Source: Vitrella brassicaformis CCMP3155 (taxonomy: Eukaryota; Protista; Chromerida). From it: a DNA stretch of 64,000 nucleotides. The position numbers were made by a program, and so were the translations under genes. The DNA lies in assembly GCA_001179505.1 (NCBI GenBank), contig CDMY01000223.1:98319-162318 (forward strand). The letters run 5' to 3'. How positions within the stretch are numbered: position 1 is the stretch's first letter; each line of letters opens with the position of its first letter. The notes beneath the pieces are model-generated. The model was not told where the DNA came from, ran no database searches, and saw only the letters and a program-made list of their open reading frames with translations. This document shows, piece by piece, positions 18,608-24,834 of the stretch.

Positions 18608-19948
18608 TCATGATGGGACAGGTTCTGCGGTGCCCCACAGCTGCTTGAGCCTGGCGTCGCGGCCACACGACCTCCTGTAAAACTTGTACAGCTCGGAACT
18701 CTTCTTGTAGTAGTCCTGATGATAATCCCTGCACACACACAACACCATGTGCTGTTGGCCTCTCCCTCTCTCCTTTCCGCCCTCCTCACTCGGCAGGGAA
18801 GAATGTGGCGGCCGGGAGTATCTCTGTGGCTATGGATCGGCTGCCGAGGGCGCCTGAGCTCTGGAGCTTCTTCTTGCTTTCCTCAGCTATCCGACGCTCA
18901 GCATCGGTGCGCACAAAGATCGCAGAACTGACGACAGACGGACGCAGATAAACGTGGCCTGTGCTGTGTCTGCCATGTGGGCTTCTGTGTGTTCGCTTAC
19001 GTGTATTGTTTGCCCTTGTCGCAGAACTGTCCTGCTCTGTCGGTGGGGTCAATAGACCGCCAGAAGAAATCCACCAACGACTCGTACGATGTCTGCACAC
19101 AGGCAGGGCAAATAGATGTCCCGGCAATTAGGGCAAACCTTCCTTGTGTGTGTGTGTGTGTGTGTGTTGTGTGTTCGCATACCACTGATGGGTCATATAC
19201 GACGAGCACCGACTCCCGGTGCCCCGTCACGCCCTTGGACACCTGCAGGACGGGCAGAAAGACAGACACACAGACGCATCCATTGCCTCGGCCACTGGCC
19301 CGCCCTGGGCTCACTGACTGACACACCTGTTGATAAGACGGATTGGCCACATTGCCTCCAGTGTACCCAGACACGACAGAGTTCACCCCCTTCAAGGCCT
19401 CAAAATCTGCACCCGCCCGCGATGTGAAGAGACAAGCATGGGACGTTCCTCCCTCTCTCTTTCGCTCTCCCACTCTCCTCGGCGCACGCACCTTTCTCGC
19501 TGCACCAGAAGCATCCTCCAGCGAATGCCGCCACCTCATAGCCATAGCCCTTCACAGCGGCCGCCAGGTCATCGGCTGACGGCACGTCGCCCTGAAGCGA
19601 CTCCCGGCTGAAGTCAATCTTCTTAGTCCTGCTGTCGTAGATGGGCAAGCCACCCGCATCTGCTGCATCTGCCGCACCAGCTGCTTGCAGGAAGGAGAAG
19701 GGAACCTCACGCAGGGAGACGGGCCGCCGCTGGAGCAGTTGACGCGAAAGATCGTCTGCCGTCCTCACTATGGCTGGCGGATCTTGCAAGGGAATCAGTG
19801 GTGGGGCGTCCGCAAGGGCAGCCAGCGCGTGAAGCGAGGGAGAGCCAGGCGGCCGTCCTCTTCTTGCCTGTTGGTGTGGCGATGAAGGTGGCTGCAGGAA
19901 TGCATCGGCAGCAACCAGCAGTGCCTGGCAAATGGCAAACAGCTTCAT
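18608..19948 (-). CDS. MSRA: Peptide methionine sulfoxide reductase A with signal + transit-like leader
   Basis: AAFAGGCFWCSE, VVSGYTGG..NPSYQQV, GHRESV, DPTDRAGQFCDKGKQY, FFPAE|DYHQDYY. The leader MKLFAICQALLVAADAF is followed by an S/P/R-rich stretch. Confidence 0.92.
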
Positions 19949-20150
19949 TCTGCAGACCTCGTAGATCTGCAAAGCTCGCAAATGTCAAGCCCTAGGGTGC
20001 TCCCTGAAACCGCTGCTGCTTGCAGCAAAGGAAGTTCCGCTGAACCGCTGAAAGCTAAACCAGCGGATCTCTGTGGTGATCTTGGCGTGAGGTTGTCCAC
20101 ATCGCATCTCTTTGACAAGGCAGTTGGCACCGAATCGGGGAGGATTGAGG

Positions 20151-22210
20151 ATGGCGACGACACCTGAGGCTGCTGGCAGCAGCGGGTACCACCGCCTCGA
20201 GAGCGAAGATCCCGCTGCCGGGCCCTATCATGGTGAGGCGAACGGACGCCCTCCGCTGCAGCACAGAGGTGGGAAGGAAGCAAGGCACACACGCACACTC
20301 ACGACAAACACACACCTCCGTCGTGCAGGCAATGTGCTATTTATTGCCTGATTTCCTTCCTGTGTGCAACTAACTGGTCAGGTTCTGGCCCCATCCACAC
20401 GTTTGCCCGAGATGTGGCGGTTCGGATGAGTGCCACAGTGCGGAAGATTGAGGACTCCGGCGAGTCGATGAGGGTGGAGGTCATCGTCTTCTGCCTCTAT
20501 CACCTCCCGGTGAGCTAGCGCATCGTGAGCAAACAGAGAGAGGGATGGCGGAGAAGTGCTTCTCACTTGTGTCTGTGTGTGTGTGTGTGTGTGTGTGTTC
20601 GACCGGGCGTGGCTTGCCTTTGTGCGAAGGAGTGCTGCGACGGCGAGGAGCGTGTGCATTCCCACGGTCGGTGTCGCCACTGGAAGATCGTCAATGACGT
20701 GAGCCAGCTCCCGTGGCACCCACACCTCGTCCTCAGAGCCAGCGACACCAGGGACTTCGTTCCTGAGATGTGGTCAGCTCAACACACACACACAGACATA
20801 CGCACACCCACACAGACGCACACACACACACAGCCTCTCGGCAAACCCCTTTAGCATCCTTGTTGTGTTTCTGTCTGTCTGTCTGTCTGCCTGTCTGTCT
20901 GCCTGTCTGCAGCGCTTTCAATCTGTGCAGCGGTGTGTGTGTGTACCTCAAGTCGTGGTCGGCCGACATGTACGTTTCGCTGGACCTCAAGGCTTTCCCC
21001 TTCGACCAGCAGTTGCTGCCCATCCGCCTCTTCTGCACCAACGCACGCATGATGCCACAAATCGACCTCTCATTCGCCGCGTGGGCGGGAGGGCCCGGAT
21101 GGTATGTACGGTACACACAACACAACACACGTGATCGAGATACAGACAGACAGAGAGTATCCGATAGATGAGATGGAGCCAGCCACTCACCTCACTCACC
21201 TCACCTGGGCATCTATCTGTCGCATTACTGCATGGTACGGTGCCTGCCTTCCTTGTGGTGTGCAGGTGGCCCGACCTGCCGTTTGTGATTGACAGTTTGT
21301 GCGAGATGGCGGTGCAGACGAGCTCGTGGCATGTGGATGAGGTGGAGCCGCTGCGATTCAGCAGCAGCGACTTCAGCAGCCTCTCCACCACCTGGATGCT
21401 CGCGCACGTCCAGCGGAGCTCCCACTTCTTCCTCTGGAACATCATCATTATCATGTGAGCGACGTGCCTGTAGGTAGCTAATGGCCGTTTGGAGGCTTGT
21501 GTGTGTGTGTGTGTGTGTGCGTGTGTGTGTGTGTGTGCGTTGCGTAGGTTCCTGATCGTGTGCATTCAGTTTGCCTGCATTGGGATCCACTTGACCAACT
21601 TCGCCGACCGGGCACAGTTCTGCGTCACCCTCTTCCTCACCGCAGTCGCCTTCAAGCTGGCCGTCGCACAAAGGTGGGTGGGGAGGGAACACACAGATCC
21701 TCACAGTCAGCTGCGCCACCCTCTCCTCTCTCCATCTTTGTGTGTGTGTGTGTGTGTGTGCGTGTGTCGTGTTGGTTGGCCAACCACTCCAGCCTCCCCC
21801 CACTGAGCTACCTCACCTTCATGGACAAGTATATCATCGTGTGTTTCGTCGTCTTGTCCGCATTCATCGTCGAGTCCCTCATCGTCAGCCACATCGCCCA
21901 CGGCTGGGGAAGCGAAGCGCTCGCCCAACAGGTCGATTTCTGGTTCTACATCGTCTCCTCGGCATCCTGGGGCGTGTTCCACGTCTGGCTCTTCTGCAAG
22001 AGTGGGGTGGCTGACGTCTTGGCGGAAAGGAAGCACAGGCGGCTGTGTGGGGAGTCGGGGGGGGACGACGAGAGGGAGCCGCTCAGCAAGGGGAGGCATG
22101 CGGCCGTACGGCCCGTCAAGAAGGGGTCGCTCATGTCGTCGATGATGAAGCAGGACACGTGGGAGATCAAGGAGGAGCTCACGCAGAGGACAATGGACTA
22201 TGACACCTGA
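20151..22210 (+). CDS. Pentameric ligand-gated ion channel, Cys-less Pro-loop (ELIC/GLIC-like) type
   Basis: VSLDLKAFPFDQQLL Pro-loop; pre-M1 QRSSHFFLWNII; M2 ADRAQFCVTLFLTAVAF; M2-M3 LPPLSYLTFMDKYI; four hydrophobic helices with a short M3-M4 loop. Confidence 0.85.
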
Positions 22211-22661
22211 AGGGAAGGCCAGGCTCTTGCCTTGTATGTCTGTGTGCAGCGAGTGCATGCCCTTGAGTGTCTGTGTGTCTGTGTGCATGGCATGAGTCAG
22301 TCTTCCTGGTCAAGTAGGGCGTCCTAGGCTTTGTGTGGCCGTTCTTCGTACCTAATTTGTGTGCCGTGCCAGTCGAGTCGGGGATGGGTGTCGGTGTGGG
22401 TGTGGGCCAGCGGGCGGGGGGTGCGTGGACTTACCGTAACTTCAGATAGATAAACAGCTTGTCGCTATGTGGTTTTTATATCAGGGCGTTCCGTGCCGAA
22501 GGAGAGCGTTGCAGTGCACGGCTGCGATACGCACCCCTTTGCACACGCATCTTTTTCACCAGGGACGCGTGGATGAATCAGAACAGACATGGACAAACTA
22601 TTTACATGTCATTCATGTCAAGTGTCCGTCTGGTCCTCCGGGTCTGCTCACACGAACACAA

Positions 22662-23129
22662 CTATCTGACCCCTTCACCGCCCGTCATGGCACTTGCCAT
22701 GCCCGGGTGACCACTGGCGGCAGCCTGTCCTTCACTGCTCTCATCACCCGTTTCAACACTCTTATCGATTGGCATCTTGAGCCCCACACTCGCCGCCACC
22801 TTCTTGATCTTCTCAATGTCCTCCGCACTCTCGCCTATCTCGTACTTGTCCATCAGACTCGCCACAGCATTGATGCTGTCACGGTACTCCACAAACCCCG
22901 TCAGCAGCTCGGGCCGCTCGTGCGCAATCCGTGTGCCCCAATCATGCCACATGGGGTTGTCCCTCTTGTGGCACACGTCACGCTCGACGACCGTGAAGAA
23001 GTCGCGCAGCTTGGACGCGGGAGATGAGCCATTGAGCTGATGCTGCTTGGGCGCCGCCTTGGATCTGGCAGGATTTGAGGATGACGGAGACTGGCTGGCG
23101 CAGCAGCGGCGAACAGACCGACGCAGCAT
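22662..23129 (-). CDS. Small intronless hypothetical protein with a mitochondrial-presequence-like N-terminus
   Basis: Open frame from MLRRSVRRCCASQSPSS (R/S-rich, no acidic residues) into a helical-looking core, with coding-like codon pattern and no microsatellites. Confidence 0.55.
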   Translation of the reverse strand: MLRRSVRRCCASQSPSSSNPARSKAAPKQHQLNGSSPASKLRDFFTVVERDVCHKRDNPMWHDWGTRIAHERPELLTGFVEYRDSINAVASLMDKYEIGESAEDIEKIKKVAASVGLKMPIDKSVETGDESSEGQAAASGHPGMASAMTGGEGVR

Positions 23130-23197
23130 CGTCCTCGTCGTCCTTCTGCTCAGCGGTTTCAGGCCCCTTACACTGCGAGCTGGAACTGATGCGCGAG

Positions 23198-24834
23198 ATG
23201 ATGGCAACGGCAGTTGAGCAGGTGGTGCCGTCCGCGATGGGCGACAAAGTCGTTCTCAAAGACGCAGATCTGACGCTGCACGTGCCCATCTTCGATTTGG
23301 CCGAGGACAATGAGTCCCTGCGGATGGCGGTGCGAGAGGCGTGCAAGACCATCGGCTTCTTCCTTGTCAAGAACCACGGTGTGCCTGAAGAGGTGACACA
23401 GATGGCGAGCAGCAACAGAAGGAGAGGAGATGGTTCGTCGTCTTAATTTCATGAGTGCATCTGTCTGTCTGTGTGTGTCAGTTGCTGAGCCGCGCGTTTT
23501 CTGAGATGCGGCGGTTCTTCTCGCTGCCGATTGAGCGGAAGATGCAGGTCGCCGCGTCGACCAACGCCAACAACCGGGGCTACACTCGGTGGGCAGAGGA
23601 GACCCTCGATGTCGAAAAGTCAACGCAGGGCGACACCAAAGAGGGTCAGAGGAGAGGGACAGACCAACACACACGCGACAGACAGATATACACAGTCACT
23701 GCTGCATCTGTCTGTCCTGCGCGTCTGTGCTGTTGCTCTGCAGGGTACTACATTGGCCGTGAGGTGCCGCCCGACTCACCGGAGACGTCACTGCCACTTC
23801 ATGGTCCCAACATGTGGCCAGCGGACCTCCCCGGATGGCGAGAGGTGCGTAGGACAGACGAGAGAAGCAACGGCTGTGTGTCATATGCTGTGCGTGTGCG
23901 TGTGCGTGTCATTGGTGCAGACGATGGAGGAGTATGTGTCGGCGGTTATCACACTCAGCGTGCGGATCACACACCTCCTGGCGATGGCCCTTGACCTGCC
24001 AGAGGACTGGTTCGATCAGTACTTCACGAGGCCTCTCACTGCGTAAGACGCACAAGAGAGGCTAGATGAACGCAGGCTTGATGCTTGCAAGTGTGTCGGT
24101 GTGTGTGTGTGCAGCTTGCGGCCGCTGCATTATTCGGCAGAGCTGTCGGATCCGGCCAAAGGGAAGTTTGCTGCCGGCGAACACTCAGACTATGGTGAGA
24201 GCTCTAGCAGAGAGAGCCCCGCTGGCTGCCCTCCTACACTGCTTAGGTTCCCCGTGGTGTCTGTCTGTCTGTCTGTCTGTCGTGTGTTATGTGTCAGGTA
24301 TGCTGACTGTGTTGGCGACTGACGGCACGCCAGGTCTGCAGATCAAGCCGCGGGGCTGCGACAGGTGGATCGACGTGCCGACAATCCCTGGCACTTATGT
24401 CATCAACCTGGGGGACATGCTGCAGGTGTGAGTGAGGTGACCACAGGGATGCCTTGATGTGATGTGTGGATTGCATTGGTATAGAGGTGGACCAATGACG
24501 TGTTCATGAGCACCCCCCACCGGGTGGTGAATGTGACGGCCACCGAGAGGTACTCACTGCCCTTCTTCTACGAACCCAACTATGACACAAAGGTAGGTGT
24601 GCAGTGAGTGCATCCACACACACAGAGAAAGAAGGCAGGCGGACATAGACGTGTTGTTTTTTTAATCCATCCATTTGGCAGGTTGAGTGTCTGCCGTCGT
24701 GCTGCTCGGCCACCAATCCGCCCAAGTACGAGCCCTGCATCAGCGGCCAGCACCTGATCGGCAAATACAGCGCCACACACAAGGACTTCGCCAACGAGAA
24801 GCCACACACCATGAACGGCACGGGGGGACAGTGA
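23198..24834 (+). CDS. 2OG-Fe(II) oxygenase, isopenicillin N synthase/DIOX_N-like
   Basis: VPIFDL, ACKTIGFFLVKNHGV, NRGY, LHGPNMWP, LRPLHY, AGEHSDYG (HxD), NLGDMLQRWTND, STPHRV (distal His), RYSLPFF (RxS). Confidence 0.92.

Follow-up and report, generated by a model that had tools for sequence, protein, structure and literature searches.

A probable Cys-less pentameric ligand-gated ion channel subunit encoded by an expressed nuclear gene of Vitrella brassicaformis, a chromerid alga

The pentameric ligand-gated ion channels, or pLGICs, have been studied more than any other fast neurotransmitter receptors; to our knowledge, nothing is known of their role, ligand, location or physiology in unicellular eukaryotes. 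Cys-less members of the family from protists, among them stramenopiles, chlorophytes, haptophytes and Alveolata, were catalogued in 2016 by Jaiteh, Taly and Henin (PMC4795631), and a paper of 2024 mentions Cys-less pLGICs once more, in diatoms (PMC11085791). Signal peptides and C-terminal tails are not discussed in the 2016 catalogue, and that paper and its available supplements mention neither Vitrella nor Chromera. The gene described here lies in a 64,000-nucleotide stretch of Vitrella brassicaformis CCMP3155 DNA (assembly GCA_001179505.1, contig CDMY01000223.1, positions 98,319 to 162,318 of the forward strand), which is referred to below as the window and by its own numbering. Of photosynthetic organisms, the chromerid alga Vitrella is the one most closely related to the Apicomplexa. 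We conclude that the locus is, with high probability, an expressed, single-copy nuclear gene for one subunit of a eukaryotic Cys-less, or 'Pro-loop', pLGIC. The kind of protein is already known in protists, and the Vitrella gene is an additional member of it.

The protein encoded in the window was searched exon by exon (Table 1), and the joined protein was used in the local checks of frame, collinearity and charge. When the seven exons were scanned singly against Pfam, one match was obtained, that of exon 7 to Neur_chan_memb (PF02932) over profile positions 48-84 (E 0.022, 15.4 bits), and when the PF02932 profile was run against the whole genome, exon 7 of this locus was the only candidate (E 0.05). 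The only genome-wide candidate for the ligand-binding domain profile, Neur_chan_LBD (PF02931), was found in an 820-codon open frame on a different scaffold (L001, G000:C666:144336-144530; E 0.75, 14 bits) and is most likely a chance match. Among the structures of the PDB, 42 of the 44 matches of exon 7 were pLGIC chains, aligned from the M2-M3 loop through the end of M4, the last of the four membrane helices (M1-M4); the best of these was DeCLIC (E 4.7e-5), followed by GABA-A, sTeLIC and GluCl. Exon 4 matched residues 98-133 of GLIC, the Pro-loop stretch, in each of the best 60 of its 70 matches (E 0.05-0.15), and exons 5 and 6 returned chance matches only (coronavirus spike, spermidine synthase). 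A search of 1.84 billion representative sequences with exon 7 yielded 12 relatives that are 30-48% identical to it; the window protein itself was not among the representatives matched. The set of relatives was enlarged by word-index searches, of which those with profiles A1 (see below) and A2 (whose rows include window exons) returned five to six relatives, the window protein again being absent.

The identity of the protein as a pLGIC is settled by profile A1, which was made from eight relatives and which bridges the gap between the window exons and ELIC. Exons 4-6 were not used in picking these relatives. Against the PDB, A1 matched 309 pLGIC chains in total and aligned with ELIC at E 4.6e-30, from profile positions 31 to 284 and ELIC residues 9 to 275, a span that takes in the ligand-binding domain and M1-M3; the ligand-binding part of the profile aligns to ELIC residues 9-205. 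Run against the window exons singly, the same profile scored exon 7 highest, followed by exons 6, 4 and 5, all in the correct order, with a much lower score for exon 2 (Table 1). In the local frame check, the joined protein formed one collinear domain of 193.5 bits over residues 49-401, and in a MAFFT alignment each exon falls in its proper block. Furthermore, every column that is invariant among the relatives is kept in the window protein, namely the Arg before M1, the Arg at 0', the Leu-Thr pair of M2, the P/Y/T/D/Y residues of the M2-M3 loop and M3, and the Asp and His of M4. A beta-sandwich ligand-binding domain upstream of M1 is thus recognized via the bridging profile, in exons 4 and 5, and not directly by Pfam; it is followed by a four-helix domain of the Neur_chan_memb type in which R277 (0'), L286 (9') and P300 (M2-M3 loop) are present.

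The evidence from fold also comes through a relative. The closest full-length relative, P0010, is 24% identical to the window protein over residues 44-397, and its AlphaFold model has a predicted local distance difference test score (pLDDT) of 67.9 as a whole, rising to more than 90 within the membrane helices. Compared by Foldseek, this model aligns over 330-370 columns, at probability 1.00, with no fewer than 500 pLGIC chains. An earlier note on this DNA, made from its letters alone, had proposed a Cys-less Pro-loop pLGIC and had suggested profile searches with Neur_chan_LBD and Neur_chan_memb as a check, with the lack of any profile or structural match as grounds for abandoning the idea. 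The proposal is supported by profile A1 and by the PDB matches of exons 7 and 4. Of the suggested check, the profile match stood, by way of the relatives, and the direct Pfam scan of the exons stayed below threshold; matches of both kinds, the A1 profile and the P0010 fold, were found through relatives.

The relatives include a transcript of the haptophyte Chrysochromulina rotalis and sequences on TARA scaffolds, where they adjoin Bestrophin, Kelch, PDZ and PPR-DYW genes. The ESM Atlas neighbours of P0010 are eukaryotic pLGIC-like clusters from diatoms, molluscs and rotifers, of whose members Pfam sees 12-31%, and most relatives in the clade (P0002, P0003, P0013, P0020 and others) have no Pfam family or a sub-threshold match to Neur_chan_memb. 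A single bacterial relative, from a Rhodobacteraceae metagenome-assembled genome, has both the ligand-binding and the membrane domain confirmed by Pfam and scores below the eukaryotic relatives. The nearest sequences are eukaryotic in this comparison, which covers the relatives retrieved and the ESM Atlas neighbours, and, as placed by its nearest neighbours only, the window protein would fit the eukaryotic Cys-less group.

The Pro-loop reads VSLDLKAFPFDQQLL and occupies residues 151-165 in exon 4 (nt 20974-21018). V151 and L165 stand at both Cys positions of the C-x13-C pattern, exactly 13 residues apart, and the two flanking cysteines of the metazoan Cys-loop are therefore missing. Between them, F158-P159-F160-D161 (nt 20995-21006) aligns with the FPFD of the relatives and of ELIC and GLIC. 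The pore helix and the loop that follows it read DRAQFCVTLFLTAVAFKLAVAQ and then SLPPLSYLT (residues 276-306), split by intron 6 (nt 21606-21671 in exon 6, and 21672-21817). Val and Leu in place of the cysteines, an M2 and M2-M3 loop close to those of ELIC, and an Asp at M2 -1' had all been read from the sequence beforehand. These readings hold: the ELIC M2 given for comparison in the earlier note agrees with the alignment, and the Asp is aligned to the ELIC Glu through the family profile, in which F-A-D-R-A-Q of the window protein stands opposite F-S-E-R-L-Q of ELIC.

In cation-selective pLGICs, the established marker is an acidic ring at -1' without Pro-Ala at -2'/-1'. Because the window protein would present a ring of Asp at -1', and because the Pro-Ala anion signature is absent, a cation-selective pore, as in ELIC, is plausible. 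If the subunit works as others of its family do, five copies would be arranged around a pore that their M2 helices line. Binding of a ligand in the beta-sandwich domain, at the boundary between subunits, would shift the Pro-loop and the M2-M3 loop and so open the gate at L9', and the Asp ring at -1' would render the pore selective for cations.

Several observations weigh against this assignment and its details. The Pfam gathering cut-off of 28.1 bits was reached by no exon in the single-exon scan (best 15.4), and Neur_chan_LBD gave no match in the window exons or at the locus. Exon 3 received no score from A1 and, together with most of exon 2, is without measurable similarity to the relatives. 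The fold was matched with P0010, which is not the window protein and is 24% identical to it, and the model is moderately confident. The residue at -1' is variable among the relatives, being D, E, S, N or H. None of the protist Cys-less pLGICs has been functionally characterized (PMC4795631). Lastly, a simple hydropathy scan found no signal peptide, residues 1-48 being hydrophilic with a maximum 12-residue hydropathy below 0.

The gene model was obtained by a three-frame reading of 20100-22260 and a check of splice sites, and comprises seven exons with 436 codons on the plus strand, closed by a TGA stop. Each of the six introns is bounded by GT and AG, measures 93-164 nt and contains a (GT/CA)n run of 10-24 nt. 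For transcript evidence, contigs of runs X1, X2, X7 and X3 were aligned to 19950-22550. Single spliced contigs from X1 and X2 (study P1) and from X7 (study P4) carry six of six junctions with 0 differing letters, and run X3 contains the unspliced genomic form of the gene. The stretch is present in eight sequencing runs, several of which contain about 0.57 of the sampled words, a share equal to the exon share of the stretch. A donor for exon 1 at GT 20233 was ruled out, as the transcripts cut between 20268 and 20269, in equal phase and with 12 more residues. The start and end given in the earlier note proved exact (ATG at 20151, TGA at 22208-22210), and the extracellular-domain exons, for which it had considered splicing out of frame, are joined by the transcripts in frame with the membrane exons.

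Table 1. Features of the Vitrella channel gene and of its predicted product, in window coordinates or, for the pore helix, in residue numbers of the protein ('family profile' is profile A1).
Feature	Position	Strand	Basis or remark
Minimum 5' untranslated region	20025..20150	+	Transcript contigs
pLGIC gene, coding sequence from start to stop codon	20151..22210	+	Frame-consistent GT-AG model; junctions in X1, X2 and X7 contigs
Exon 1: hydrophilic N-terminus, residues 1-39, without hydrophobic signal-peptide core	20151..20268	+	Donor 20269 from contigs; hydropathy
Exon 2: first beta strands of extracellular-type domain	20382..20509	+	Weak family-profile match, 2.5 bits
Exon 3: variable part of ligand-binding-type domain	20630..20772	+	Transcripts; no detectable similarity to relatives
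Exon 4: beta6-beta7 with Pro-loop (loop 20974-21018, V151...FPFD...L165)	20913..21101	+	Family profile, 21.2 bits; GLIC 98-133 match
Exon 5: beta8-beta10, pre-M1 Arg243 (21414-21416), M1 start from 21426	21266..21454	+	Family profile, 16.3 bits
Exon 6: remainder of M1 (to 21590), M1-M2 turn, pore helix M2 (21606-21671)	21548..21673	+	Family profile, 29.9 bits; ELIC M2 alignment
Exon 7: M2-M3 loop LPPLSYLT (21794-21817), M3, M3-M4 loop, M4, tail, stop	21793..22210	+	PDB, Pfam; family profile, 86 bits
M3	21827-21892	+	In exon 7
M3-M4 loop, acidic, 14 residues	21893-21934	+	In exon 7
M4	21935-21997	+	In exon 7
Hydrophilic tail, 70 residues	21998-22207	+	In exon 7
Minimum 3' untranslated region	22211..22389	+	Contig ends at 22366 and 22389 (X1 and X2)
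M2 position -1'	D276		
M2 position 0'	R277		
M2 position 2'	Q279		
M2 position 6'	T283		
M2 position 9'	L286		
M2 position 13'	A290		
M2 position 16'	L293		
M2 position 20'	Q297		

At their 5' ends, the contigs stop at 20025-20034, directly 3' of a dispersed repeat that acts as an assembler break point, and the transcript may therefore begin further upstream. The N-terminus of the protein is nonetheless firmly defined, since a TGA (20088-20090) lies in frame upstream of the ATG at 20151, the known 5' untranslated region contains no further ATG, transcripts cover the region, and a divergent gene lies about 200 bp upstream.

The copy of the repeat in the window is a 34-nt repeat end (19991-20024, core CCTAGGGTGCTCCCTGAAACCGCTGCTGC) between the two divergent genes. 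Counted over the genome, the CCTAGGGTGCTCCCTGAAACCGCTGCTGC repeat has at least 37 copies, found on either strand, and its reversed control has 0. Other copies (e.g. L006-L010) continue upstream through about 70 nt of further conserved sequence, giving a unit of about 95 nt, before they diverge; this resembles the end of a dispersed element, of which the window copy is the last 34 nt. Contigs of RNA and DNA runs alike break at this repeat, so that the transcript's actual 5' end is masked. Upstream of the channel's start codon, another ATG begins a frame of 61 codons (19982-20167, plus strand) that overlaps this start codon in a different frame, and this would be an upstream open reading frame only if transcription begins upstream of the repeat. 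The divergent neighbour is encoded on the minus strand (19400-19948) with its start at about 19948, so that about 200 bp separate both start codons. Its N-terminus (MKLFAICQALLVAADA...) resembles a signal peptide, and in its first exon there is a GCFWC motif, reminiscent of methionine sulfoxide reductase A; a Pfam scan of the exon piece gave no match. Beyond the 3' end of the channel gene, the X7 contig extends at least 550 nt past the ends of X1 and X2, beyond 22550 and into a convergent minus-strand open reading frame (22662-23207), which may reflect either overlapping 3' ends or an assembly merge.

Two accounts of how the subunit is oriented in the membrane have to be considered. According to the first, the orientation is canonical: the beta-sandwich is exposed outside the cell or to a lumen, where an external chemical or the pH is sensed, M1 stays uncleaved and serves as a reverse signal-anchor, and the part after M4 is extracellular. 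We give this account about an even chance of being correct. Every characterized pLGIC that we know of has this orientation, and the homology to ELIC, GLIC and DeCLIC spans both domains. Translocation of a long N-terminal domain without a signal peptide is rare in eukaryotes but has precedents, for example some neuregulin-1 isoforms. Nevertheless, all of the characterized pLGICs known to us also carry a signal peptide, whereas the first 48 residues of the window protein, whose N-terminus is firm, contain no hydrophobic stretch. Mitochondrial or plastid targeting of this N-terminus was set aside, as it is acidic and lacks the signal peptide of a complex plastid. By the ordinary rules of biogenesis, a long domain that precedes the first membrane helix and has no signal peptide is retained in the cytosol; here, the domain ahead of the first helix is 246 residues long, and it may therefore be cytosolic. 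Also at odds with an external tail are the basic cluster ERKHRR, which lies beside the membrane after M4, and a KKGS site, and no N-X-S/T sequon occurs in the whole protein. The contrast extends to the relatives, as about 13 eukaryotic ones have no signal peptide and the bacterial one has.

The second account, which we hold tentatively and rate a little short of an even chance, is that the orientation is inverted, with the ligand-binding domain and the tail in the cytosol and an intracellular ligand gating the channel, in the plasma membrane or in the membrane of an internal store. A protein with four membrane helices has both of its termini on one side of the membrane, and the tail would consequently be cytosolic if the ligand-binding domain is. 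The relatives are consistent with such an arrangement. Of the eukaryotic relatives, about 13 non-redundant ones extend as far as the first beta strand, and none of these has a hydrophobic N-terminal stretch by hydropathy; in an alignment-based table all 20 of the eukaryotic relatives examined have a hydrophilic tail after M4, of 33-130 residues. Their M3-M4 loops are short and acidic with 0-2 Lys or Arg, and that of the window protein contains no Lys or Arg among its 14 residues. The bacterial relative, P0022, is the opposite in each respect: it carries a signal peptide, lacks a tail and has an M3-M4 loop that is basic. Literature searches on a Vitrella pLGIC, on signal-peptide-less pLGICs and on inverted-topology pLGICs found nothing relevant. 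This means that no paper on such a topology was turned up, and the combination of an absent signal peptide with a post-M4 tail appears not to have been described before. Conversely, the family offers no precedent for inversion, the charge bias is modest, with tails that are nearly neutral overall, and the N-termini of the relatives, which derive from transcriptomes and metagenomes, may be mis-called.

Many of the relatives (P0001, P0011, P0024-P0033) have a segment after M4 of the form G-x-(R/K)-F-x-W-F-x-x-x-W-(D/E)-x-V, with the common core WF..SW(D/E)xV. This conserved segment may be an interface helix of the clade; the motif is absent from the window protein. The sharing of a tail motif by many relatives likewise speaks for inversion. 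It is conceivable, although we would stop short of calling it probable, that the window protein and its protist relatives together form a pLGIC clade of inverted topology, in which the signal peptide was lost, the M3-M4 loop acidified, a conserved tail gained and an intracellular ligand adopted; a release channel of internal stores is one possible function of such a protein. On sequence grounds, the missing signal peptide and the long tail make it less straightforward to see the protein as a sensor of chemicals or pH that faces outward; the earlier note had suggested a chemosensory or pH-gated channel, perhaps of the flagellated stage.

That the gene is a decayed or co-opted relic, and its product no longer a ligand-gated channel, we consider improbable. 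Exons 2 and 3 have indeed diverged past recognition, and the ligand-binding domain is invisible to Pfam. However, the 436-codon frame is unbroken across six introns, transcripts occur in independent studies, and every family-invariant residue of the relatives has been retained.

Two features, the shortness of the M3-M4 loop and a pore like that of ELIC, have a prokaryotic look. Even so, it is highly improbable that the assembly is contaminated with bacterial DNA or that the gene was acquired very recently from bacteria, in view of the six spliceosomal introns in the (GT/CA)n style of the neighbouring genes, a GC content of 0.577 between flanks of 0.55-0.60, the presence of spliced mRNA, nearest relatives that are eukaryotic (the C. 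rotalis transcript and the TARA scaffolds on which Bestrophin, Kelch and PPR-DYW genes lie nearby), and a best match among the 1.84 billion representatives that is just 48% identical over 70 residues. Contamination is excluded by the introns, the composition and the spliced mRNA, and the channel gene is a nuclear gene of the host; the host-style introns had already been taken in the earlier note as a sign of integration, and the host-like GC content and spliced transcripts bear this out. In the whole genome, profile A1 matched this locus alone, a count that is a lower bound, and the gene appears from these matches to be single-copy.

The Vitrella locus offers a clean test case for the family in unicellular eukaryotes, as it is apparently single-copy and is expressed, its N-terminus and splicing are firmly defined, and it belongs to the closest photosynthetic relative of the apicomplexan parasites. 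Because the clade is largely invisible to Pfam, Pfam-based inventories of protist channels probably undercount it. Should the sensing domain prove to be cytosolic, the superfamily would gain a branch gated by intracellular ligands, a mode not described for it, and the orphan Cys-less channels of protists and invertebrates would have to be assayed in inside-out patches rather than by bath application.

Among the known systems, ELIC is the best solved match of A1 (E 4.6e-30, both domains). It shares with the window protein a Cys-less FPFD Pro-loop, a short M3-M4 loop, identical pore residues at 0', 2', 6', 9' and 13', and an acidic residue at -1'. The two differ in that ELIC, a bacterial protein, begins with a signal peptide and stops immediately past M4, whereas the window protein is eukaryotic, is encoded with introns, and has a 70-residue tail and no signal peptide. 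Furthermore, ELIC has Glu at -1' and Phe at 16' where the window protein has Asp and Leu, and pairwise similarity does not suffice for Pfam to call the window protein directly. DeCLIC (Desulfofustis, PDB 6v4a/9ftg) is the best direct match of exon 7, from the M2-M3 loop through M4, and also has a short M3-M4 loop, but it differs in having an additional periplasmic domain at its N-terminus and in lacking a C-terminal tail; both DeCLIC and sTeLIC (6fl9) are bacterial and are secreted via a signal peptide. More generally, the prokaryotic ELIC/GLIC type is intron-less, with a signal peptide and a short end after M4, in contrast to the six introns, absent signal peptide and 70-residue tail of the Vitrella gene and its product.

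The metazoan Cys-loop receptors (nAChR, GABA-A, GlyR, GluCl) have the same fold and domain order, as seen in their matches to A1 (E 1e-22 to 1e-26) and to the P0010 model (Foldseek E about 1e-14). Unlike them, the window protein has no C-x13-C disulfide and no long basic intracellular domain between M3 and M4; it also lacks a signal peptide and sequons for N-glycosylation, and carries its hydrophilic extension after M4 instead. The protist Cys-less receptors (PMC4795631) resemble it in being pLGICs that lack the two cysteines, and the relatives found here are protist as well.

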